The notes under the pieces are model-generated. The model saw only the letters and a list, made by a program, of their open reading frames with translations, was not told the DNA's origin and made no database searches. A program made the position numbers and the translations under genes. DNA of 63,472 bases, the filler included, from Bigelowiella natans CCMP2755 (Eukaryota; Protista; Cercozoa), in the NCBI GenBank assembly GCA_000320545.1. It is 6 parts of 6 records of this genome, joined end to end, with 100 filler letters (N's around TTAATTAATTAA, not from the genome) between each part and the next. Parts side by side here need not be neighbours in the genome. Positions count along the whole stretch, not along the records: positions 1 to 23,358 come from ADNK01000802.1; 5 more parts are not named here. One strand, 5' to 3'. Below, one piece after another: positions 2,089 to 47,064 of the stretch (within the stretch, counting starts at the first letter, position 1; every line of letters begins with the position of its first letter).

Positions 2089-2829
2089 CACACCACACCA
2101 CACCACACCTTCACACACGCGCGCGGGCATGCACATGCGGACATAGACGGGATTGTTGGATGAAAATGTATATTTGTATATGTTTCGAGCGGCTTCCACT
2201 ACTCCCAGCGGAAAAGACATAACGTCGCACCTCCGACGTGCAATCCTCCAGGATATGCCCGCAGCGCTTCAAGCGCAGCTTCTTCATTTCCAGGGCCGAG
2301 CATGATCACGTGCCCTCTGAAAACACACACAAACAACGCAAATTTGAGTGTCTTCGCGTAAAGATACATACATATATAGATATATAGGTATAGATATAGA
2401 TATCTTATTTATTATATTTATACTTATGCAGTTTTCAAGTCTGTATCTATCTATCACCCCTTCAGTCGGTCCTTCTTGTACATCTGGGCAAAGTATGCGG
2501 CGCCTTTCTTGCTCTCGAAATTGGTCACGGCCTGTATATAGACGAGAAGCGAGGCGAGATCGGTCAAAACGAACGAGCAGTAAGATGCGGATGACTGAAT
2601 TGGTGTTGCTCGATGCTGCCACCTCAGTGCCGCCCTTTTCGTTGTCTTTGAGGGTTGCCCCTACAATTTGAGTCACTTTCCCGCCTCCTAACATCAGAAA
2701 TAATCCATTAATTTGGCTGATCGTCTATGATATGGCTGCCTCCCCTCCCCCCCCCTCCCACTCACTTAGGTCGATGCAAGGCCTAAACTGGACACGGCGC
2801 AGTTTGCTGTCCTCCCTTCCCTGCATCAT
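100..2829 (-). CDS. HIS6: ProFAR isomerase, eukaryote-type HisA (HIS6/HISN3). Multi-exon; the 3' end runs off the window start.
   Basis: Hand-spliced GT-AG exons read VQFRPCIDL|RGGKVTQIVGATL|AVTNFESKKGAAYFAQMYKKDRLK|GHVIMLGPGNEEAALEALRAYPGGLHVG|GITPENAQKYLDAG|ASHVIVTSYVF|ELVDTVGKERLVLDLSCRR|FYVVTDRWQKFT|LAKYCSEFLVHGVDK|EGKRSGIETEL|VSFLGSVSPIPVTYAGGIRSLQD. All are diagnostic HIS6 motifs. The start ATG at 2829 is tentative. Confidence 0.93.
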
Positions 2830-3330
2830 CTTCAATGCTGCTTCCTCCTGCCCGTCTTCTGGCGAACCCCGCGGGAGAGCTTCGTCCGTCTCGGAGGGGG
2901 TGGTCGGGATTTGGTGAAGAGCTCACCGTTCTGCTACGAACGACAAAGGTGTACCACGACTACAAAGAGAGCGACAAGGAGTTTCGCAAGATTTAGGAGG
3001 AAAACGGCATTACATCGACGTGTTGCGACAGCGAACACACGGGGTGGTAGGGTTCGTTGATTACCAGGGTTCGTTGGATTTCGGGAGGAGGAAGGGCGAT
3101 TTTATTCTGAAATTGGTGATAAGGGAATGTCGCTCTTAGTAATCACTGAGGATAAGAAGCCATCTTATGGGGCGGTAGTGGTACTGTAGGTCCAGATCTC
3201 GATCTTCACCGGGATTTTACCGGGATTCTACCGGGGAAAACGGGCAGAGATCTTCGATCGGAAACGGACCAAAGCCGACCGGAAACAACCGATCGGCTCC
3301 CGTCGCAACAGCAGCAGCTCTCTTTCTGTT
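2830..3330. promoter_or_regulatory. Putative bidirectional promoter between HIS6 and the next gene
   Basis: Divergent gene starts about 500 bp apart. The interval is CpG-rich and microsatellite-free, with three tandem ACCGGGATTTT-like 11-mers (3208-3240), AGATCT sites and CCGGAA at 3279. Confidence 0.45.
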
Positions 3331-3667
3331 ATGCCCGTCGCTCTGCTAGCAAGGGCAGCCGGGTTTACCTGTCGGAGAAGAAGGTGTGGATGTAGGGAGA
3401 GGAGGGGGGGTGATAGATATTCCGCAAGCAGCCCCGTAGCCGCTGCGGGTTTGAAATGGAGCTTGGCGGGGTGTTGATGATGAAGGCATGGGGAAGGCTG
3501 TGGTGATTCCTCTTGATGTTGGTTTCAGCACATGGCTGTTTCACCGGCGGGCACTATTCTCTACAGAGTGCACACGTGTTGTGGATGGTGTGCGCTTCAT
3601 CGATGCTGAGGCGTGGTGGGGCAGGTATCTACCCGGGTGTCAACCTTCTAATGAACGCGATACACTG

Positions 3668-3706
<39 letters not shown>

Positions 3707-4154
3707 GTGTTTCGGGGAAACAAAAAGAAAATCTTGTGCATATGTGAACATAGGGCCAGTCACCTTTTTGTTCGTTCGTTCTTCTTCATTCTCCTCCTCC
3801 TCCTCCTCCTCCTCTTCCTCCTCCTCCTCCTCCTCCTCTATATCACGCGAAACATACTGGTAGCATCGACGAGCTGCCCCGTCCGGTCCCAAGCTCTCCG
3901 GTCTCCTCACGAACGCAGGGGTCGGCTTCTGGGAGGATGACGATGCCGAGACAGCGGAAAATGCGACAAAAAATGGACCAGGGAAGGTCACCGAGGGATT
4001 TGATATAGCGGGGAGGGGCTCGTCTGAGACGAATATTGAATCAACAGGCTGTTTGTTAGAGATCCAGTCCTCGCTGTGTCTGCAATCGGAGGAATCCCTA
4101 TTCGGTACCATAAAACGTATACTCCCACGTTTGTTGAGTCCTCTTTCCCTTTCC

Positions 4155-4202
<48 letters not shown>

Positions 4203-4663
4203 ACTTCTTTCTGTCTGTGTTGGGGGTGTGGGGAGGGGGGGGTATGCATGCGATGCGTGATTTGGCTCTAACGAATGTCAAATTCGAAACTTTCTCTTTT
4301 GATGCCCAACCCCAAAATGCGACGACGATGTCCTTCTATTGTTGTTGTAATTTAAGGTTGGGAACTTCAGTTCCGAGAGACTGCGTGGAGCTTGGTATTG
4401 GCCCTGTTGGAAAGGGGTGAGCAGTCGAAAGGAAAAACTAGTAGTGGTTTGTAGAAGAAGAAGAAGAAGTAGTAGTAGAAGTAGTAGTAGCAGGTTGTTG
4501 TAGAAGTAGCAGCAATAAGTTGGAAGAATGGAGCTGAGGCCAACCTGTATGATCTTCAATCTCATCGTATCTCCTACTCTTTGTCAACTAAAGGCCGGTG
4601 GTGCATGTGAAAGACCTTGCCGATGCGTTTCGGGTGAGCAATGCTTAGTAGCGCTTATTCGTC

Positions 4664-4706
<43 letters not shown>

Positions 4707-4881
4707 TTAGTATTTTGCGTAGGATGAGAGGTGAAGTGTAGCCATGTCATATTACCAAGGATGAGTGTTGCATCAGCGGCAAATGGGCCTGGCAGGGTTC
4801 CCCTCTTATCTAAATCCTAAGGGCATCTCAGCCGATCAGATGTGGGATGTGGTGAGCTGAATCTTTGTTTGTCAGCTGCAT

Positions 4882-4928
<47 letters not shown>

Positions 4929-6179
4929 TTATTATATATTTGCTGAAGTGAGTGAGTACACCCACAAATACAGGTAGCAAAACACCGGCATTTCAGTGTG
5001 GCACACGCTGCTTCTGTCTCCTTCGTAATGGCTGGTAAATTGGAAACGTTACCGTGTTGGCATGCAAAGAGGGGGGGGGGCGGGGAGGGGAGAAGGGAGA
5101 GCTTCGCTTATAGACCACATCCCACTGTGCTGCAAATCATTCCTTACACCCCTGGCAACAACGGCACGCACCGCCGGCGGACGTTTCTTTTTCAGGCCAC
5201 TCGTGTGCAGTCGAGAACGAGTTCAACTGCCAACGGTGAGAGAAGGAAGTCCAATTGTGCGTGCTTTTATTTAAAACCAAAAAAAAAAAATGATGGGAGA
5301 AAAGTCGCGGGCAGGCACTCCAAAGCTGTCCCTGCACTATACCCAACCCTCTTTCATTTCCGATCACTCTGAGCTTTCCGGCTGAACATTCTTCTCATTC
5401 GTTGTCTGTGCTACTGCTGAAACGATGACGCTCCTACTACCACTTCCTCCCTGCCGCTATTCCGGTCCCCGAGTAGCGATATCATCCACATAGCGCGGCT
5501 GACTGTGGCAAGGACGGCGGCGCAAGCCAACCCGCCACTCGTCGTCCCCCATCGAGAACTCCTTCCTGCATATAGAAGGGTAATAATGATACGACTGCAT
5601 CTATGCATAGTCGATCAGGGTGGTATACTTCAGTACCAAGTGCTGATAAGAAGCAAAAGCGTTGATTCGATCCCCTCCCCCGCCCTCCCTCTTTTCGCAT
5701 CCGTGCCTCCCCGCCTTCCATTCCGCTCGATGTGGCAGGTGAGAGAATCGACGGCAGGACTGATCGAAGAAATGAAGCAGAGGAAGAGGCCAGAGGAAAG
5801 TGTGTCCGATAGTCTTATTGTTGTCGTTGCTGCTGCTGCTGCTGCTTGGCAGCATCTACGTCTCCTTTCGTTGATTCTCCTCAAAGCGTTTAATAATTAT
5901 GAGCCGCCGCAATGATCTTCATCCCCTCCCCCCTCTCCATACTACGATACAGTGAACGTCGGCGATTGGCAGGAAGCTCGCTTCGCAATGTTTCCGGCTG
6001 CAAAGGCCCACGTTGCTGTGGTCACCGGTTCTCTTCGTAATCTGCAGAAACTGTCAGGGGAAATGTCCTCGGGCGGTAAGGAGATCGAGTATGTTCGCTT
6101 ACTTTCCAAGATGAACGACAGCCTTCACGCGATGCTGCCCGATATGTTTGCGCCATCACCGGACTGCATCAGTCCCTGA
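3331..6179 (+). CDS. Multi-exon hypothetical protein
   Basis: Protein-like segments bounded by AG/GT between microsatellite introns (TWLFHRRALFSTEC..., GVGFWEDDDAETAE..., LGTSVPRDCVELGIG, ARTAAQANPPLVVPHRELL). The terminal exon reads NVGDWQEARFAMFP...PDCISP*. No family recognised, and the exon structure is approximate. Confidence 0.5.
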
Positions 6180-6748
6180 ATACGAATGTGAACACGTTGT
6201 TGGAGTAACCCACAAACACACACACACACACACAGAAATGTGGAGTGAAAGGACGCTTGTACCCATTGTGCCCATGGAAGGCGTGTGTAGCAGCTGCGCA
6301 CTACACGCGCGCGCATAGCCCGCAAGCTAGTACGTACGTGCGTGCATAAGCATGCTGCCTGGAGGGTATGTCTGCCCTCTTGGCCTTCCGCATTTGCGCT
6401 GACACTCGCCACAGACATGCAGCCACGTGCTCTAGCATTTAGGCATCATCATCATCATCATTGAGTGTGATTCAGTTGAAGGGGCCGCCACACCCATTCC
6501 ACACCACCGATTTGTTGTGCCAGTCGGCATATTGTGTTGATCACTTGTTTGTACACAACATTGGAGCATAATATAACAGGACCTACAATTACAGGGTCCC
6601 ATGCTAGCATGTGAGCTACATGCTAGCTAGCAACCAGCATGTTAGCAGCGCACTACTTGCTGTGTGTCGATCCATCAGAACCAGCGTCGCATATAATGCA
6701 TGACGAAATGAGAATGACACAATGATCATCATGGTGCAATGATAACGG

Positions 6749-6882
6749 ACTCATTATAGACATAGTTATATCATATGTGCACACATTACACACATGGTGT
6801 GACGTGTGTCTATACTTATTGTAGACATAGTTATATCATATATGCATTATATACATGGTATAACGTGTCTATTATACTCATT
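6749..6882. repeat. Diverged tandem duplication, unit about 65 bp
   Basis: The unit actcattatagacatagttatatcatat... (6749-6813) repeats at 6814-6875, and a third copy begins at 6876. Confidence 0.85.
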
Positions 6883-7113: not shown

Positions 7114-9915
7114 CTAATGTTGGTTCAATATGAACTTTGTAGGTCCTGGAATCGACAGGACATCCGGAGCCTCAGCCCAATTGAGTAGTTCTTGCTCGCC
7201 AATGCCGTCGTCGATGGACCTCTGCACGCGCTGGTACGTGTATGAGGAGTTGGGGAGATCCTGATGATGAGTGGATGAGTGAATGAGTGAATGCAGTGGT
7301 GGTAGTCGGCACAGCGTGTGAGTGGACGTTTTGCTACTAAGTTTTCTGGCAAACAAAATGAGTAAGTTTTAGTTTTTTGCTTAGGTGGCTTTAATATCAT
7401 CATTATCATCATCGTCGTCGTCGTCGTCGTCTCCATAAAAATCAACTCGCCTCTATCGCCATTAATTACACAACATACACTCAACCAGCTGGCGTTGTAC
7501 GTCGATCGAGACGCTAGTGTTGCAGAGCTCAATCATCATCATCTTCTTCTTCTTCGTATCATTGTTATTCTATGGCTACTACTACTACTACTACTCACTA
7601 CTACTTCTACTTCTTCTTCTTCTTCTACGACCGACCTTATCGTCCCGCTCCTTCAGGAAGTGCCACTCTCGTGTCTCCGGATTCCACACGCACTCCACGA
7701 TCCTGCCGTCGAGCTGGAGCGCCTCGCTGGGCGTCATGCGTGGCGGAAAGCGTAACGGAGTCGGGATGATCCTAAACTCCTCCTTGGCCTGCTGCTCCTC
7801 CCCTGGCTCTCCGTCGAAGCCCTCATGCGCCGCAGAGTCCACCACTTCTAGCACTGCGCGTTCACTGAGGTCGTACAGGGAGAGTGATGATAATGACCCC
7901 GTCCCCTGCCCCCCGCCCCCTCCCTCTCCCGGCTGCTCCTCTTTCGCCTTGCGGAAGGAGAGGCGGAAATCCATCGAGTTGAGGTGCGGGAACTTCCACT
8001 TGAGAACCGACCCGTCAGTCCCCGGCTCGTACTGAGCGCCCCACGGCTGCACGACCACGCCATCTGATTCGTGGGGGACGGAGGGAATCACCTGCTGCAC
8101 CACCTCCTTCATCGAGCTGAGCTCCCAGTAACGCTTTCGCCGCACCTTCGCCGCCTCGGCGCCGTAGGCGCGTGCGACGCTGCCGTCGGGCCCCCACTGT
8201 GAAGAGGACGACGACGACGACGATGATGATGATGATGGGGAGACCTGGCGCTCCTCCTCCCTACCCCCTTCTTCCCCGATCCGCGCGGGCAGCGTGTAGC
8301 GGGTGCCGTTGGAAGCCAGGAGCTGCTGCTCGACGCGGCGCGGCCAAATGACGTGGTCGAGGATGGCCTGATACCGCGCGTAGAAGGGCAGGTCGGTGAG
8401 GGTCTTCATGTTAAGAGCGATCATGTCGTATATCAGCAGGCGGGGCTGGATGCTTCCATCCGGCTCGCGATCCAGGGTGAGCTCGGCATCGAAGAGCGTG
8501 CCGTGGTGTACTCCGTTGAACTTGGGGAGTTTCCCCGGCGCTGGAGGCCACGCCTCGTCGGTGGAGGATAGCGTCACGCGCCCGCTGTCGCCGGCCTGCT
8601 GCTGCCGTCGCTGCTTCTGATCGCCAAAGTCGGCTCTGGAGAGAAAGTCGTCCTCCTTTGACTCCGCCCCGTCTCCGTCCTCATCCTCGTCAATGTTGTC
8701 GTCCCCCCCGCTGTCGTCCTCTAACACCGGGTACTCCTCCACCACGTTGAAGGAGGGCGGTTGATCCTGCTGTCGCTGCCGTTGCTTATCGAGGCCCCCC
8801 CCGTCGCTGCTAGCTCCATTGTCCATCACCAGCCCCTCCCCCTCCGCCATCTGGCCCTCCACCCCGTATTCGGTGTCGTCGTACCACTTGATCACCTGCG
8901 GGAAGGGCCTGACGACCGTCGGAAAGCGCATGTGGAGGCGCGTCACGCGAAAGCTGCGGTCGATGAGGTAGACCCCGTGCCGCATCGCCAGCGTCAGCGC
9001 ACGAGTTCCGTCGGCCTTCCAAGTGACGCAGTACGGGTACCTCCTGACTAGGTTCTCATTGTCTTTGTAGAGAGAAACTGGCTGCGAGCCGGGGAAGGGT
9101 ATGTCCAGCCCACAGTCCGCGAGGCGACAGGCCAGGGCGCGTATCTTGGAGATAACGTGTGGGTTGTAGATGGGCTCGCCGAGGTGAGCAAGAGGGCTGG
9201 TGAGCCTTTGGAGGTCCGCTCCGTCTCGAATCCCTGGCTGATACGACCTGAACTTGCCGTCCTCTGGTAAAGCCTGGAGATCCGTCGGGGCCTCGTCGAG
9301 GAGGTTGCTCCGAGAGAGCCTCACCTGCCGCCCGTTCTTTAGGTATACTGTCGCGAATGCGAACTCGTCGACTCCGGCGGGCTCATTCGTCGCTGGCCCA
9401 GCTGGCTCTTTCGTCGCGGCCTGTGCCCCATCTGGCGTGGATGCCGGCTTCTGGTCCTTCCCGAAATCGACCTTGGGGAGGAATTCCTCGCCCTTTAGCT
9501 TCTTGGCCCCGCCTTCATATCTTTCGTCGAAATCGTGCCATCTCTTTATCTTCTCCTCGCGCCGCAGCCTCGCGTCCTCTACGCCCTTGAACCCAGCTGC
9601 GCCCTCTCTTCGGCCAGCGTTCTTCGACTCGCCGCCCGCCTCCCCGCGCGCATCTGCCGGAAGCTTTGCAGGAGTGGACCCCTCATCCTTTGGGCGGATC
9701 ATCGACTTAAGAAAGCTTCCAAGCCCTCCCTTGGGAATCTGTTTGAGCTTAGGCTTGGCTGTTACCCCAGAATCAACCCCCAGGCCTGCAGCGGAGCCTG
9801 CATGCCTTGGTGCAAGATTAGTTGTCAAGGAACAAATGGATCCCATTACCATCAACAGGACTATCCCTCCGCCCCTTCCTCCCTGTTTGCGAGCCAGGGG
9901 GGGGTGACGCCGCAT
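7114..9915 (-). CDS. mRNA capping enzyme, guanylyltransferase plus OB domain. No RNA triphosphatase domain; N-terminal signal/transit-like leader.
   Basis: Motifs seen: FPGSQPVSL, motif I VTWKADGTR (KxDG), III TLFDAEL, IIIa LLIYDMI, IV HESDGVV, V VLKWK, IVECVW and VI WHFLKERDDK. One phase-0 GT-AG intron (7635-7261) joins to DLPNSSYTYQRVQRSIDDGI, with the stop at 7114. The first in-frame ATG is at 9915. Confidence 0.93.
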
Positions 9916-40724: not shown

Positions 40725-40824
40725 NNNNNNNNNNNNNNNNNNNNNNNNNNNNNNNNNNNNNNNNNNNNTTAATTAATTAANNNNNNNNNNNNNNNNNNNN
40801 NNNNNNNNNNNNNNNNNNNNNNNN
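40725..40824. other. Assembly gap linker
   Basis: N44-TTAATTAATTAA-N44. Confidence 0.97.
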
Positions 40825-41090
40825 CAAAATGCAGACACTCTGGGCCGAGGAGCACAACGGGATGTTCGATGAATTCATGAGTAAGGCGCTCGGGTTCCAA
40901 CGGTCGGTATACATATCTGTCCACTTAGCATCTCTACGGCTGATGGGCAAGGACGAATCCATGCATGCTCCTCAAACTAGCCACGCATATCGCTCTTAAA
41001 CAGCCAAACGTTCGAAACGAGTATGTACCAAGCAGCGTGCCCGACGTTGTCACCTAAACACGCCAGTCAAACATCTTTCTCTCCCTCTCC

Positions 41091-41132
<42 letters not shown>

Positions 41133-41570
41133 CTCAGATATGCGGAAAACGCGGTACGAGCCCTTGACACACGGCTTCAAAGCATCGAAAAGCTGGAAAA
41201 GGCTACCATGGACAAGATGGATAGGTCAGATTGCCCGCAACGATATGATTTGCCTCTCTGTTTGATGAACATAAGACATTCATATGTCTATGCGTGCAAG
41301 GAAGGAATGGAAAGCAATATAGTTTTTTTATACACAAGAGTAGAGATTGCTTGCAATGCACCCTTTCGTGCGAGTTTTGCGTGCGTGTGTGCGTGTGTGT
41401 ATGTGCGAGTGCGCGGAAGCGAAGAGTGATGTTCCTTGGCGTTGATTCACGTTCTCAGCGTTGACCGGCGGATAAACGACGAAAGATCTGCACGACAGCT
41501 CTTTCTTGCAGAGTAGGACATTAATCAAAACATCTCCTTCAAACCATTCGATGCCGTCGGGAATATAGCA

Positions 41571-41611
<41 letters not shown>

Positions 41612-42218
41612 ATGCGCTTTTGAAAAATAAATAATTTACACCTGAAAGAGAGACGGAGCACCGTATATATTCATCTCTATCTAATAGATAAGGTTTCTTG
41701 TAAGAGACCCGTCGTCACTCCCCTCCTTCTCGTCTTTCCAGCTTGCACACTGATTGATGGATGGGTGGGTGGGTGGTTCTTTGCAGGAACGCAGAAGCGC
41801 AGAAGCGGGCGCAGTCTGAAAGAGCACGGCAAATCGAAGTGCTGTATAACCACCGGCGCCATTCCGAGGCCATTCTTGCTAAGATGAAGGGGGTAAGTGT
41901 CAGTAGAAGTAGCAGCAGCAGCAGCAGCACTAGTAGAGGAAGCGATGCCAGCAATACAGGAGCTACTTTCGCCCCTTTTTGGGAGAGATTTCTTGCATGG
42001 TGCAGACACGCATAGACCTGCAATCGAGAGGCCATTGTACAATGGCGTGTCTACTCGGTTTTGAGTACAATCTCTCTTCAAAGTGCCAACTTCCTCCTTT
42101 TCACCGTCCCTTTCTACCCCCTCGCCCCCCCCTCGTAGATTCAAGATAATATTACCTCTACAACGACTTCATTCGTCGAGTCTCTCCGCCAACCATCGCT
42201 CTCCCCACACCACTCCGT

Positions 42219-42253
<35 letters not shown>

Positions 42254-42352
42254 CAACGATACGTGCCTACCCCCAATCCTCGTCAATCCGTAATTCTAGA
42301 TTATCATACTTTTTTCAAAACTTTAGTTTCCTTGTGATCCATCCAATTAGGG

Positions 42353-42388
<36 letters not shown>

Positions 42389-42470
42389 CTGCGCGCGCGC
42401 GCGCGTGCATTGTGTACAAGGATGCTCTCGGCTTCGCCGTGCGGCCGATCATCATCATAGTTTGAGATGA
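40825..42470 (+). CDS. 3' part of a hypothetical coiled-coil protein
   Basis: Phase-consistent splicing gives KMQTLWAEEHNGMFDEFMSKALGFQR|YAENAVRALDTRLQSIEKLEKATMDKMD|RNAEAQKRAQSERARQIEVLYNHRRHSEAILAKMKG. The end is approximate. Confidence 0.5.
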
Positions 42471-44325
42471 AACCGGATTGGTTCCAAATCTCTAATTTTC
42501 TTCATTCGCACTTCCCTCCTCCAGGATCGCCCATTGTTGCGATGGGTAGAGGGGTAAGATCTCCCGGGATGGTAATGTCGGCAGCCCCTGCCCCCCCTCC
42601 TAATGCGGAATATGCTGAAAGGACACGACAGCATAATCGGTACAAGAAGCAGGAGCAACAATCTCAAAGGCCGCTGCGACACTCAAGCCTACTCTCTTGG
42701 ACGGGGATTGCAGCACCTGAAGACGAAGAAGAGGACTCTTCGAGGTATCTTGTCCTCTCAATAACACATGGAAAACGTCCCACATTTTCACTTTTAAGAG
42801 GGGGGGGGAGGGGGGGCGGCTAGGAAAAGGTTTTTTTTATCAGTGTCATTCTTGTAACGTGCCGTTTGTCACATCAACTCGAAATACCATATCTCTCCTA
42901 TATTCATGGTCATCTTCAAAAGCAGGAGCAATGTTGCCAGGCCTCATCATTCATCCTCGCGGGCACGAGACAAGAGTGTAGTTTTTTCAGCCTGCCCGTC
43001 CCCTGCATGGGAATAGTACGCAAAGATCACCAAAATGGTCAATTTGGAGGGTATGGAGCGAGCTAAGATGCGAGTCGATTTTTTAAAAAATATTTTATCG
43101 TGAATGTGAAAGTTAATGCATGTAAAGTATCAGTAGGCAGAAGGGTGCATGATAGAATGCATCAACTAATGCTAGTCTAGTAATCGCGTGCTTGTTTATT
43201 CTGGCTCGTGCATGAGTGCTAAAGAAAATGCCCCTCGCTCTACAATGGCGCTACGCTGTAATTGCAAGCTAGCAAGAGCAATCGTGCTAGCGTGAGTATC
43301 AATAAATGATGCTGCATATCGTCTATTTTTGTCAATCAACCTCTACCTACCTCTTCTCAATATCACAAGGCTATGTAATTCATGCGACACTGTGATTAAG
43401 CAATGATAGCAATGTAGACGCAACGCCTTGAATTTGGTCACCACATTCAAGCACATCATGCAGCGTTGCGCATTGCAACTTATTCAACGAAGGACTATGC
43501 TAGCTAGCTAGCTCGGTGATGTCATGTGCACAGCCGCATATTGCCCACACATGCGCATGCTGGCCAGCTTGCTAGCTTGCGTGCTAGCTAGCTAGCTAGC
43601 TAGTTTCACCGATTAGATGGATGATTCCGCAGAATGATCAGCTTCAACAAAGTTCGGCTGCAAGCCAATTAATGCCATGATTCTGAGCAATCTTGCAATC
43701 TGGCGCCTGACTGCACGCAACTGCTCTGCCTGCCACATGCACGTGCTTGTGAGCTAACCAGCTAGTCATCTAGCCACGTACGTGTGCTTCATGTGACAAT
43801 GTCGACTGTGTGCGCCAGGGCGAGGTAGCTGCTAGCGCACTGCCTGCAAGCGTTGATGATGACATGCTAGCACGAAAGACCATCCGTTTCAGAATAAGAG
43901 AGAGCTGCCATCACAATCTGACGACGAGTCGTCTAGCACAACGATCTGGACGAGCTTGCGAGTAGTGGCGGCTGTGAATTGTGAGCCACGACTGTTACGA
44001 AAAATTATGCCAATTTGATGCACCGCGACAGCGACAATTTCGGGATTCAAAGTTCCCTCGGAGCGGAGCGGTTTCCGTACGATCTTCGTTAATACCGTTG
44101 TCGCAGATGCCATTCGACATTCGTTAAGATGTTTTCGGTCATTATTTCTAATTATAGCCGCTCGATTTTAGTCGCAGAGGCGGTTGCAGTAACGAAAAAA
44201 AAACCTCGTCTAGCCGTACTCACCCCTATCCAAGCTCCGCCGACGATCCGAGGTTTGATGCCGTTGAGCACGACTGTGTAGTCGTTGGAGAAAAAGAGGA
44301 TGGTTCAAGCCACTCATTCTCGGGG

Positions 44326-47064
44326 ATGAAGGTCTCAGGTCCTGTTAGTGAGAGAAAAAGGCCGGAAACGGCCGCACCGCACCTTGAAAACCCAGGGGAG
44401 GGTTCTGAGAATCAATGGCGTATTGCTTGCTTGGATTGGATAGCAAATAAAGGGAGAGGACTTCTCTTCGTTTCCGCGCTATTCATTGTTGTGTCTGGGT
44501 CATTCCTTTTCGGTGTCGCTAACCTTGTGGCTTTCCCTGGAGTGACCTCGCGGACATGGCCGGCCACAGCAGCTCTGCTCCACGCGCTGCTGTTCTTAAT
44601 CGAGTTCCTGATTTTCCCAGAGAGCATCTATACAATGGCACCTGGAATAACGACGACACCCTGGATTACCTACTGGCACGCGAGCGCGTGCGGCTCGATA
44701 TTCTTCCTGAAGTTTGTGACGGAGTACGCGGTCACCAGAAGCGTGAGTGCATGGGTTTGGGCTTATTCCTGGTTATTTGGCCTGGTTGTTTACCTGCTCA
44801 TCTGCGTTGTTCCCACTTGTACCTTGGTCAGCAAGCTGGGATGGGGCCGCGGTCACATTTTAAATAAAGTATTTATATGGTCAATCATTCTGGGATCTAC
44901 TGCGTCTATGAGCTTGGCTGTCGTGTTTTGGCCGATTTCCAGACAGGTAGTCATATTGCTCATTATCGTACTTTGATGTAGTTCAACTATGTTTTGGCGT
45001 GTATACTTGTTGGTTTTGGGGCCGAATTCAGAGCCACATCCAAAGCGGACATTCTTTTTTGGCCATGATTATTACTTCCACCCTGAAAACCTAGCCGCAC
45101 TCCTCCATGGGATGAACTACAATTGTGCTTTCAATCGCACAGGTCAATAATATCTGCGTGGACATAGCTTCTGCAGCGGGATTTACCGGCTTTATATACC
45201 TTGCAATATTTAGCAAGTGGCTGTCCTCCCATAAAGCGGCGTATATACTCTATACCTGCTTGATAGCGTTTTCAACTCGAGTTTTAGGCACGATAGTCTT
45301 CAATTTCACATCGTACAGCGGTGGTGTCCTGCTCGCAGGTTTATCACAAATTGTTTTTGCAAAGTTGCTCTATTCTGTCAGCCTCTTCTTGTTCGGTGAG
45401 ATGCTGGACAATGTGGATCTTCCTCCAGAGAAAAGATGCGCCATGCTGTTTATGCTGCAGTTTGGCGAGGTTGCACTTTCTGATTAATGAAAATATCATA
45501 TTGTGCGTTAATGTGTTGCGTGAACATCCCCGCTTTATGTCTCCCTTTCCCCCTCCCTTTCATCTTTCTCTCTTTCTCATTCGAACGTTTTATCGAATGA
45601 ATTTTGAAAAAGTATGAGCTTTGTGTTGTGTGTCTGTGTGTGTTTGTCTGCATGGGACGGGGCGCAGGACTTTAGTGTGAGCGCGATCTTCTCCACGATC
45701 AAGCTCACGGGCCAGTTCGCCGCCATTCTACTTTTGGTGACAGCCTTCGCATCCCTGAGAGCGTCCGGGTTTTTGAGTGAGCACTGGTCGCGCATCGTGA
45801 AAGGAAATACCTGCCCCCACAAGTACTGTTTAACAGCTCCCACCACTACCAAGAACAACAACAAAAACAACTTGTACTACTGCTGCTGCTGCTACTACTA
45901 CTACTACTACATTACTACTACATTACTACTATGACTCACGCATTGCCTCTCTTTACTCTCCAGAATGATGCAGTACATGGATAAAGCGTTCCGATATCAG
46001 GAGCAGGGGATGGTATCAGACTGCCTGGCTTGTTGCGCTGTTGCTGCTGTGGTAAGTGTAGATTTTTGAGGAATAAATAGACCAATTGCCGAACTCGCTG
46101 CTTAATTTTAAGGATGCAGAAACTGCCTAATTTCTCAGTGTTGGGTGCATGCATCGCCAGATGGCAACCCCTTTCATCTTCTTCATATTTCGTATTATCG
46201 CTTATACTAATGGGGGGGAGAGCAAACGCCGTTAACGTCACACGAACTGTCAAGGTTATGTCCGAGTTTCTGCTCGCGGATGAAGTATCACCAGGCCGCA
46301 AGCGCAGGTTCACTCGCAAAATAGCGAGGAAAGATGATATCATCCACGATACGATATGGGTGCTCCTGGTCATGATTGTAGTCCAATTTATTCGTTGCGG
46401 CATCTGCTCGATATGGCTGAGGCAGCGCTTGGCTCGGCTGCAGAAGGTCCATCTGAATGCAATGCTTGGCGCCGCTGATAGCGGGAAGCGTTCTGTCGAG
46501 ATGGGGTCGCTGCGAAATCTAGAGAGTCGGGACGCGGAAAGGCCTGAGGAGAAAGAGGACAAAGATGACTCGAAATCGCAAGGCAATTCAGTGGGGGATG
46601 CAGCTTCGATCGCTAATACCCATGCCAAGTCGCCGTCAGTTCGGACTATATTTCCCAAATTTCCTGAGCAATCCAATGAGGGGCCTCGCATAGAAACGCC
46701 ACCACATTTTGAGGGTGATGAAAGAGATGTTCCAGAACGAGCGCCTCGAGAGATACCGAGTCCTGAGACTCCTAAACGGGGCAGGGAGCTCCATGTGGAA
46801 GGGCAGCGCGTATCATCTATTGGGGGGATTCCTAATAAATTTAGATCCAATACAATTTCAGAGGTTAACATAACTTCGATGATGAGCTCTGAGAAAGGGC
46901 TGGGAAGGCATAGGCACAAGCGGGCATCGCTACTTGCCCGCACGAGCGTTGCCAATTCCTCAGATCAGCACTGGCGTGAGAATTACATCCTCTTCCTAGC
47001 AGCAATTGCTTCGATCATAACGGGCGTTAGGTACTGGCAAGCAGAGTATTCCGATGGGGAATAG
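44326..47064 (+). CDS. Hypothetical polytopic membrane protein with a large charged C-terminal loop
   Basis: Consecutive hydrophobic ORFs (44326-44976, 45125-45487, 45670-45810, 46114-47064) linked by plausible GT-AG introns, e.g. LQFGE|DFSVSAIF. About 10 or more TM-like segments. Confidence 0.65.

Follow-up and report, generated by a model that had tools for sequence, protein, structure and literature searches.

A nucleus-encoded, green-like capping guanylyltransferase with a putative import leader in Bigelowiella natans: a candidate capping enzyme for the nucleomorph

We found in the nuclear genome of Bigelowiella natans, a chlorarachniophyte, a gene for a green-like guanylyltransferase that carries an N-terminal leader, and its product is probably imported to cap the mRNAs of the nucleomorph. 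The gene lies on the minus strand at 9915..7114 of the window, that is, the whole stretch of 63,472 nucleotides that was analyzed. The combination of a green-like capping enzyme with a putative import leader means that the host most likely supplies the cap-adding enzyme of the nucleomorph. The protein would be translated into the endoplasmic reticulum (ER), would then cross the outer plastid membranes to reach the periplastidial compartment (PPC), and would enter the nucleomorph, possibly aided by basic clusters that follow the leader. There, Lys300 would form the enzyme-GMP intermediate and pass GMP to Pol II transcripts of the nucleomorph at their 5'-diphosphate ends, while the host nucleus would use a separate, leaderless guanylyltransferase of the stand-alone type encoded on contig C2161. 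We infer this destination, this substrate and an origin by endosymbiotic gene transfer from the evidence set out below.

The gene has two exons separated by a single 375-nt GT..AG intron at 7635..7261, and its features, all on the minus strand, are as follows.

9808..9915, minus: residues 1-36, a signal-peptide-like N-terminus with the start codon at 9915-9913 (first in-frame ATG; hydropathy)
9826-9870, minus: hydrophobic core GGIVLLMVMGSICSL (hydropathy)
9526..9807, minus: transit-peptide-like stretch, residues ~37-130 (net charge; ortholog comparison)
9697-9726, minus: GLGSFLKSMI motif inside the transit-like stretch (aligns across three genera)
9097..9375, minus: chlorarachniophyte-conserved pre-domain region, residues 181-273 (alignment; without Pfam domain)
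7981..9096, minus: nucleotidyltransferase (guanylyltransferase) domain, residues 274-645 (PF01331 at 3.5e-40)
9001-9024, minus: motif I, TWKADGTR, with Lys300 (motif read)
8551..8895, minus: residues 341-455, an acidic insert of low complexity after MRFP and before motif III (ortholog alignment; pLDDT)
8479-8499, minus: motif III, TLFDAEL (motif read)
8413-8439, minus: motif IIIa, LLIYDMIAL (motif read)
8044-8070, minus: motif IV, ESDGVVVQP (motif read)
7966-8004, minus: motif V, LKWKFPHLNSMDF (motif read)
7636..7980, minus: OB-fold domain, exon-1 part, residues 646-760 (PF03919 at 8.6e-7)
7774-7845, minus: chlorarachniophyte-specific insert VVDSAAHEGFDGEPGEEQQAKEEF in the OB fold (alignment)
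7636-7659, minus: motif VI, FLKERDDK (motif read)
7261..7635, minus: intron, 375 nt, GT..AG, phase 0, GC 42% (sequence read and orthologs)
7114..7260, minus: exon 2, coding for the 48 C-terminal residues (DLPNSSYTYQRVQRSIDDGIGEQELLNWAEAPDVLSIPGPTKFILNQH), with the TAG stop at 7114-7116 (ortholog C-termini; profile)

The open reading frame runs without a stop from 10026 to 7591; its first in-frame ATG is at 9915, and the open stretch between 10026 and 9915 contains no ATG. At the other end, the tail of the reading frame (VGRRRRRR...) is read-through into the intron, and splicing joins motif VI (..ERDDK) to exon 2 (DLPNSSYTYQRV...LNQH*). We could fix the intron boundaries because the orthologs run on as ..DKDLPNSSY.. 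across this point. Exon 2 agrees with the C-terminal ends of both the Chlorarachnion and the Amorphochlora ortholog (P0001 and P0002) and aligns with positions 529-565 of the family profile (E 8.8e-6), and the 3' end placed at 7114 in the preliminary description proved right. One intron, a 2.28-kb exon and a GC content of 63% are unusual in a B. natans gene. Its context is nuclear, with a spliceosomal GT..AG intron and flanks rich in microsatellites.

A complete guanylyltransferase and OB fold had been claimed for this locus, and the domain and motif evidence bears this out. Pfam recognizes PF01331 (3.5e-40), broken into three stretches by low-complexity inserts, as well as the OB-fold domain PF03919, above its cut-off, and motifs I, III, IIIa, IV, V and VI are all present and collinear. 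Every segment cited earlier was located in the protein (TWKADGTR, YLIDRSFRVTRLHMRFP, HHGTL, PFYAR, VRRKRYWELS, LKWKFPHLNSMDF and GIVLLMVMGSICSLTTNL). In an alignment of 57 homologs, K300, D302 and G303 are kept in at least 90%, and D476, E478, D497, G619, K639, K641, R757, D759 and K760 are invariant. The best sequence matches in PDB are the guanylyltransferase domains of human and mouse RNGTT (~3e-27). An AF2 model made without exon 2 has a core with pLDDT >90, and its top Foldseek matches are the Pce1, RNGTT, Mce1, Ceg1 and PBCV-1 guanylyltransferases (TMt 0.65-0.76). Residues 1-228 are predicted to be mostly disordered. The acidic insert, which is alignable only with chlorarachniophyte orthologs, is likewise predicted to be disordered (pLDDT <50 at 344-452). 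The low-complexity inserts first raised the thought of an apicomplexan origin, which was rejected because the matches and the assembly statistics led to B. natans. The pre-domain region includes GVDEFAFATVY, YQPGIRDGADLQRLTSP and LAHLGEPIYNP, the last of which aligns with the HDDxLGEE linker of green bifunctional enzymes. Read from its sequence and predicted fold, the gene encodes an intact capping guanylyltransferase with Lys300 as the predicted catalytic residue.

To our knowledge, the triphosphatase of plants and animals is always fused to the guanylyltransferase. The preliminary description had reported that no cysteine-phosphatase domain stands in front of the B. natans enzyme, and we reached the same result: Pfam gave no PF00782 match in the protein, and neither HC..G..R nor C.....R motifs occur in exon 1. 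The Chlorarachnion and Amorphochlora orthologs are likewise devoid of the cysteine-phosphatase (DSPc) domain. Because it has no DSPc domain or P-loop, the protein falls outside the fused bifunctional architecture and is kin to its guanylyltransferase half; relative to its putative green kin, the fused N-terminal triphosphatase has been lost. We searched the nuclear assembly (91,405,885 bases in 3,736 contigs) for a partner enzyme. PF02940 gave no match there, nor in the control genomes; the full-length Chloropicon protein and a DSPc-containing profile retrieved no DSPc match; and a DNA pattern for HCTHGxNRxG matched 0 times. These negatives are weak, since the genome is intron-rich.

B. natans is a nucleomorph-bearing alga, as the preliminary description had assumed, and the published gene list for the nucleomorphs of B. 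natans and L. oceanica contains no capping enzyme. From this list, the nucleomorph copy may have been lost. An uncharacterized gene named 'mce' has been listed for the nucleomorph of Lotharella vacuolata (Suzuki et al. 2015), and if it is a functional guanylyltransferase, it would make the imported protein redundant in that species. We sought this 'mce' by profile search, in which the best 120 matches were all plant or green bifunctional enzymes, and by HMMER, in which it was not among the best 150 of 7,467 matches; a metagenome scan returned 80 loci, none of them AT-rich or nucleomorph-like. One AT-rich candidate with a guanylyltransferase domain alone (P0190) was considered as a nucleomorph-encoded enzyme and rejected, as it is really exon 2 of a DSPc-plus-guanylyltransferase gene: it lies within a Logan contig of 2.6 kb, where ~55 nt separate the reading frames, and the trees make it sister to Bryopsis. 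Taken with the missing triphosphatase, these data allow, with a rather low probability, a tentative extension of our preferred reading, namely that the nucleomorph capping apparatus is split between two nuclei. The ancestral fused green enzyme would have fissioned, its guanylyltransferase half would have moved to the host nucleus and would now be imported, and the triphosphatase would be 'mce' or would have been lost or replaced by an unrecognized activity.

The nearest matches outside chlorarachniophytes are all green algae, at 30-33% identity. The B. natans protein scores 30-64 bits higher on a Viridiplantae HMM than on HMMs of the holozoan-type and fungal/other groups (the fungal/other score lies 55-64 bits below the green score). 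In a PMSF tree, the chlorarachniophyte clade falls inside a Viridiplantae-containing clade (SH-aLRT 91), and in a LG+F+G4 UFBoot tree all the non-green sequences form one clade (95.3/98) with the chlorarachniophytes joining among chlorophytes. The tree was built on exon 1 alone, and its named non-green sequences come from Holozoa, Amoebozoa, Metamonada and Fungi, without a rhizarian or other SAR guanylyltransferase. Matches, ML trees and group HMM scores thus make a green affinity the best-supported origin and the best fit to the data. The grouping with green enzymes anticipated in the preliminary description held in all three, but AU tests did not reject trees with the clade outside Viridiplantae (p 0.41), nor trees with it outside a group of green and holozoan-type sequences together (p 0.30). 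The stem branch of the clade is long, at 1.1-1.4 substitutions per site, and neither ML tree settles its position inside the greens.

These last results bear on an alternative in which the enzyme and its import route are the same and the source is different: the gene would have been acquired horizontally, whether from some other green alga or from a giant virus, or would be an old paralog, and in each case would have been recruited later to serve the nucleomorph. The AU tests and the unsettled place within the greens leave room for it, as does the gene itself, which is intron-poor and GC-rich for the B. natans genome. Giant viruses of chlorarachniophytes carry capping enzymes, and a precedent is found in the nucleomorph-targeted POLD, which is related to giant-virus sequences; such a recruitment has been proposed for this virus-like nucleomorph DNA polymerase delta. 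However, the closest viral contigs share 27-29% identity with the B. natans protein and are no nearer than the green cellular enzymes; with 29% for the best of them, a viral origin was rejected. In the best ML trees as in the HMM scores, Viridiplantae come out ahead; and because four chlorarachniophyte genera carry the gene, it was acquired before their radiation. We consider another source unlikely.

Orthologs with the same architecture are found in Chlorarachnion, Amorphochlora and Partenskyella, the last seen as a C-terminal fragment. Complete N-termini are known in three genera (Bigelowiella, Chlorarachnion and Amorphochlora), and all consist of a signal-like segment followed by a basic stretch. 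In B. natans, the n-region before the hydrophobic core is basic and, at 15 residues, unusually long. The Kyte-Doolittle maximum over 15 residues (KD15) is 2.15, at residues 16-30, compared with 2.50 and 2.18 in the Chlorarachnion and Amorphochlora leaders, and the net charge of the basic stretch ranges from +5 to +8 among the three genera. The B. natans protein carries a net charge of +5 at residues 31-70 and of +2 at residues 71-130, which hold 12 acidic residues; the transit-like stretch is basic and Gly/Ala/Ser-rich at its start and then of mixed charge with basic clusters. No such N-terminal hydrophobic segment is found in green-algal, fungal or host-type homologs. Hydropathy and charge agree with the basic stretch, hydrophobic core and transit-like segment described before, an equivalent exists in both complete orthologs, and the leader is retained in a transcript-derived Chlorarachnion ortholog as well as in the Amorphochlora gene model. 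By hydropathy and charge, the leader is a putative bipartite import signal made of a signal peptide and a transit-like sequence. This signal-plus-basic architecture is that of chlorarachniophyte PPC, nucleomorph and plastid pre-proteins.

Alternatively, this N-terminus might hold the protein in a membrane or direct it to the ER, the secretory pathway or the plastid stroma, in which case the enzyme would do something other than nucleomorph capping. The long basic n-region is in keeping with such a role, and the 'mce' gene may already cover capping in the nucleomorph of at least one species. Against it, neither the ER lumen nor a plastid stroma of bacterial type is known to contain a substrate that a capping guanylyltransferase could use, and all catalytic residues are under conservation. 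The leader has the layout of pre-proteins bound for the PPC, nucleomorph or plastid, and it is kept across the three genera in property and not in sequence, as is usual for targeting peptides. A destination outside the nucleomorph therefore strikes us as quite unlikely.

The gene is not the sole capping guanylyltransferase of the genome. A second one, on contig C2161, is intron-rich (at least 8 exons), leaderless and of the stand-alone type. It was read and searched exon by exon and is absent from the tree. All six motifs are kept, among them KSDGDR, LLDGELV, DGIIFTP, LKWKP and RARPDK; its N-terminus is RGG-rich without a hydrophobic segment (KD15 maximum 0.27), and its exons score lowest on the green HMM. 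The literature calls nucleomorph proteins by the presence of an algal copy with a signal peptide beside a host copy without one, and, judged by their sequences, the two B. natans genes match this pattern of an algal copy with a leader and a host copy without. It is very improbable that the leader-bearing gene also works for the host nucleus, or works only there, as an additional capping enzyme of the host, through dual targeting or plain paralogy: in-frame Met codons at residues 22, 24 and 72 could serve as a downstream start (or ER targeting could be inefficient) to give a leaderless nuclear isoform, NLS-like basic clusters follow the leader, and the C2161 paralog is very divergent, yet that paralog has a full motif set, every complete ortholog keeps the leader, including the transcript-derived one, and no sign of an upstream or alternative exon was seen.

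Import into the nucleomorph, the reading we favor, places the protein beside several known systems. Bifunctional enzymes of green algae and land plants (such as those of Chloropicon primus, Bathycoccus, Bryopsis and Sphagnum) are its best database matches, rank first both by group HMM and by ML placement, and have in common with it the guanylyltransferase and OB domains, TWKADGTR, LKWK.xHLNSxDF, DK.xPN and a C-terminal helix. Unlike them, it has no DSPc domain or HCxxGxxR, bears a leader and three lineage-specific inserts, and is encoded in a rhizarian nucleus. Human and mouse RNGTT (Mce1; PDB 3S24 and 3RTX) and S. pombe Pce1 (4PZ6) have the same fold and catalytic motifs (Foldseek E 4e-20, TMt 0.65-0.76), with an identity of only 16-20% in the structural alignment. 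Ceg1-type stand-alone guanylyltransferases of fungi are paired with a separate metal-dependent triphosphatase. The B. natans protein is like them in having no fused triphosphatase, but its domain is of the plant/animal WKADGTR type and not of the Ceg1 type, which the C2161 paralog resembles (EKSDGxR motif I). In the cryptophyte Guillardia theta, the nucleomorph encodes its own capping enzyme, 'mce', whereas B. natans apparently encodes its guanylyltransferase in the host nucleus and imports it.

Further parallels are the nucleomorph-targeted histones, POLD, POLH, RFC1, RPA1, algal-type Nup98 and Rae1, which have a nuclear gene, an N-terminal signal, and algal and host copies, and which serve functions that the nucleomorph genome lacks. 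Those proteins have GFP localization or SignalP predictions, whereas the present leader is known from hydropathy; for POLD, POLH, RFC1 and RPA1, leader-GFP fusions were expressed in Amorphochlora amoebiformis. In the literature searched, no capping enzyme is named among known nucleomorph-targeted proteins. Our comparison suggests that the guanylyltransferase joins this nucleus-encoded class, and that the missing triphosphatase sets it apart.

Nucleomorphs are the smallest known eukaryotic nuclei and show, as an experiment of nature, to what extent a nucleus can be reduced and placed under the direction of a second genome. Should the host produce and import this enzyme, every nucleomorph Pol II transcript would depend on a host gene for its stability, export and translation, including the mRNAs for the 17 plastid proteins that the nucleomorph still encodes, and the host could control endosymbiont gene expression at one simple point. 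With the triphosphatase shed and a substitute not found, the preparation of nucleomorph mRNA 5' ends becomes a concrete, testable question, and the protein is a clean candidate for localization in the transformable Amorphochlora. Finally, a second cap N7-methyltransferase-like gene, for which a word search returned no homologs (perhaps owing to its length filter), was seen on contig C3641, with a hydrophobic stretch in the open reading frame upstream; under the split reading, its product may be imported too.

The gene on the minus strand at 9915 to 7114 is almost certainly that of an mRNA capping guanylyltransferase. Its open frame runs without interruption from 10026 to 7591, with the first ATG at 9915; the Arg/Ser tail of this frame is read-through into an intron, and beyond this intron motif VI (..FLKERDDK) continues into an exon of 48 codons.

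GT at 7635 to AG at 7261, minus strand: intron, 375 nt, phase 0
7260 to 7117, stop 7116-7114, minus strand: exon 2, reading DLPNSSYTYQRV...LNQH

Because exon 2 runs collinear with the C-termini of the two nearest database proteins and fits the family profile (E 8.8e-6), the span of 7114-9915 proposed in the preliminary description is correct, from the ATG to the end of exon 2. Exon 1 (760 residues) and exon 2 were used separately, unjoined, in all searches, fold and tree. The gene has a single intron and an exon of 2,280 bp, which is atypical of a genome with published averages of 7.8 introns per gene and 159-bp exons, and the GC content of exon 1 (62.6%) is higher than that of its flanks (48-50%) and of the genome as a whole (45%). 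Long antisense ORFs overlap the gene (e.g. 9254-9907 on the plus strand, 217 aa) as by-products of the GC-rich coding strand.

Pfam searches identified the mRNA capping enzyme catalytic domain (PF01331, 3.5e-40), split into three stretches by low-complexity inserts, and the C-terminal OB domain (PF03919, 8.6e-7). No phosphatase domain was matched by Pfam in the protein, and neither an HC..G..R nor a C.....R motif is present in exon 1. All six nucleotidyltransferase motifs were found in order:

Motif I: TWKADGTR, including Lys300
Motif III: TLFDAEL
Motif IIIa: LLIYDMIAL
Motif IV: ESDGVVVQP
Motif V: LKWKFPHLNSMDF
Motif VI: FLKERDDK

Across 57 aligned homologs, which represent plants, green algae, holozoans, amoebozoans, metamonads and fungi, the catalytic positions are invariant or nearly so. 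The AlphaFold2 model built on this alignment has 282 residues with pLDDT >=90, spanning both domains, and predicted disorder in residues 1-228 and the insert 344-452; its top Foldseek PDB matches were S. pombe Pce1, human RNGTT, mouse Mce1, yeast Ceg1 and the PBCV-1 capping enzyme. By sequence, the closest solved structures are the human and mouse RNGTT guanylyltransferase domains (about 3e-27). Pfam, the motif scan and AlphaFold2/Foldseek fully bear out the earlier description of a guanylyltransferase plus OB fold with no HCxxGxxR triphosphatase.

Chlorarachniophytes supply the closest proteins in the public collection: a Chlorarachnion reptans MMETSP transcript protein (49% identity), an Amorphochlora amoebiformis protein (45%) and, among the closest, a C-terminal fragment from Partenskyella glossopodia. 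The source organism is a nucleomorph-bearing alga, as had been supposed, and the presence of orthologs in several genera implies that the gene is older than the radiation of these genera. Past the chlorarachniophytes, the named matches of the first search were all green algae, including Chloropicon, Elliptochloris, Parachlorella, Chlamydomonas and Helicosporidium, nearly all with a fused DSPc domain. An exhaustive profile search returned 7,467 matches; Bathycoccus, Pycnococcus, a Tetraselmis cluster, Bryopsis, Tritrichomonas, Ichthyophonus, Balamuthia and Anaeramoeba were named among the best 150 of these. The best viral contigs (27-29% identity) were no nearer than cellular green enzymes.

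In a PMSF LG+C20 quick tree (75 rows), the four chlorarachniophyte sequences were monophyletic (100) and fell inside a 43-row clade with all Viridiplantae (SH-aLRT 91), their placement inside the clade being unresolved. The LG+F+G4 tree (57 rows, 1,000 ultrafast bootstraps) recovered one clade of all non-green sequences (95.3/98), with chlorarachniophytes branching among chlorophytes via weakly supported nodes. Using group HMMs built from sequences excluding all chlorarachniophytes, the Viridiplantae model scored above the holozoan-type model by 30-46 bits and above the fungal/other-type model by 55-64 bits for all four proteins. Trees and HMMs favour the green-type phylogeny that had been proposed, but AU tests rejected neither a chlorarachniophyte clade sister to Viridiplantae as a whole (delta lnL 4.9, p 0.41) nor one outside the green and holozoan types (delta lnL 12.5, p 0.30). 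Green ancestry is the best-fitting reading but not statistically exclusive, because of these AU results, the long stem branch under the chlorarachniophyte clade and a sampled tree set that contains no SAR sequence.

The hydrophobic core and transit-like leader noted earlier are present, and their properties are common to all three chlorarachniophyte proteins with complete N-termini even where the leader sequence is not conserved, a single short motif (G-x-FL-x-S) apart. The core lies inside the first 33 residues in each (15-residue Kyte-Doolittle maxima of 2.15, 2.50 and 2.18) and is followed by 40 Ser/Thr/Ala/Gly-rich residues with a net charge of +5 to +8. Beyond this basic stretch, each has mixed-charge sequence with basic clusters. 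Maxima in green-algal and fungal homologs are just 0.8-1.3 and are located away from the N-terminus. In periplastid-retained chlorarachniophyte proteins, the later portion of the transit-like part holds acidic residues, and positions 71-130 of the window protein contain 12 acidic residues. Judged from composition, the leader would have a signal-peptide plus transit-peptide-like layout, which according to the literature is required for chlorarachniophyte periplastid, nucleomorph and plastid pre-proteins.

Searched in six frames with Pfam, the whole nuclear assembly (G000) yielded only one further guanylyltransferase locus, on contig C2161.

C2161 ~40,800-44,820 (2800-6820 of its extract L007), minus strand: host-type stand-alone guanylyltransferase gene, from Pfam and exon-by-exon reading

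Because of this locus, the window gene is not the only capping guanylyltransferase in the genome, and the second, host-type enzyme sought in the preliminary description exists. It has at least 8 exons with all six motifs (AEKSDGDR, LLDGELV, YLLFDVVELAG, DGIIFTP, LKWKP and LRARPDKNHPN), a motif I of the stand-alone (Ceg1-like) type and an RGG-rich, non-hydrophobic N-terminus (15-residue maximum 0.27). The gene is very divergent, with single exons just 25-31% identical to any reference; among the group HMMs, the fungal/other or holozoan model gives its exons the best score and the green model the lowest. In this genome an algal-type copy bearing a leader stands beside a leaderless host-type copy, the pattern that Irwin and Keeling used in the case of Nup98 and Rae1.

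Plants and animals have the guanylyltransferase fused to a cysteine-phosphatase triphosphatase, while other eukaryotes use a separate metal-dependent enzyme. From the window protein and its orthologs, the fused triphosphatase domain has been lost. Profile searches of the nuclear assembly found no DSPc-type or Cet1-type RNA triphosphatase, even for the host nucleus: PF02940 gave no match (a weak test, as controls gave none either), nor did the search for DSPc with a capping-enzyme profile or the Chloropicon protein, and the whole-assembly DNA pattern for HCTHGxNRxG with up to 1 mismatch gave zero matches. All three approaches are limited by short exons, which may account for these negatives. 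Two loci belong to the cap N7-methyltransferase family PF03291, a canonical gene on contig C1238 (67.6 bits in the genome-wide search and 70.1 bits on a scan of its ORF) and a second on contig C3641.

C3641 ~95,500-98,000 (3500-6000 of its extract L020), plus strand: second cap (guanine-N7) methyltransferase-like gene, PF03291

One ORF exon of the latter, reading LSLLDVGCGRACDLAKWRDAGLDYVFGIDKS, matches PF03291 above cut-off (4e-10, 39.7 bits), and a later exon reads LRPGGYAIFVFPDGKRV. The ORF just upstream holds a hydrophobic stretch, MGLFITMAMMILAPP, and the gene may encode another imported, leader-bearing capping component. Separately, the 2,618-bp AT-rich (26-32% GC) Logan SRR23287135 contig L022 encodes a plant-type capping enzyme with DSPc and guanylyltransferase in separate ORFs ~55 nt apart, the gap probably being one intron; in trees, the half with the guanylyltransferase is the sister of Bryopsis, and the contig is not nucleomorph-like.

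By convention in nucleomorph annotation, the gene name mce denotes mRNA capping enzyme. According to Suzuki et al. 2015, a nucleomorph gene of this name adjoins orf776 and the U5 snRNP 116-kDa gene in Lotharella vacuolata. It may encode a guanylyltransferase, the triphosphatase half or a protein of another kind. Tanifuji et al. 2014 (Additional file 1) list the gene content of the B. natans and L. oceanica nucleomorphs, which includes RNA polymerase subunits, components of the spliceosome and translation factors; capping enzyme and eIF4E are both absent from the list. This list supports loss of the nucleomorph copy, with the L. vacuolata gene as a caveat. The nuclear genome holds at least 5 eIF4E-family loci, against none in the published nucleomorph list.

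C3175 16321-16913: eIF4E family, strongest copy, no hydrophobic leader
C2141 84703-84867: eIF4E family
C3191 14138-14353: eIF4E family
C2017 24009-24149: eIF4E family
C1447 134875-134949: eIF4E family

A leader-bearing copy, if present, would mean that translation in the periplastidial compartment depends on caps.

An intact green-type guanylyltransferase with no triphosphatase, a conserved bipartite-like leader and a host-type paralog form the basis of the mechanism that we propose. The protein would enter the ER co-translationally and pass to the periplastidial compartment and then into the nucleomorph, where Lys300 would form the GMP adduct and cap Pol II transcripts, their 5' ends having first been trimmed to diphosphates by a putative triphosphatase; a methyltransferase would then complete the cap. 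We regard the full chain from ER entry to capping in the nucleomorph as moderately likely. Nucleus-encoded nucleomorph-targeted proteins are already a known class, with 147 predicted in B. natans by Suzuki et al. 2016 and 1,002 PPC/nucleomorph candidates by Curtis et al. 2012. The window gene may well be in their supplementary lists, unremarked; the papers searched name no nucleus-encoded capping enzyme for a nucleomorph. Two points deserve further work, namely the loss of the fused triphosphatase and a capping apparatus possibly divided between two nuclei.

No other ORF of at least 110 aa in window 1-23358 has a Pfam domain; neighbouring genes are presumably intron-rich and so hidden from the ORF listing. 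The same segment is rich in microsatellites (32 arrays by TRF), chiefly AT, TC/GA, AC/TG and trinucleotides.
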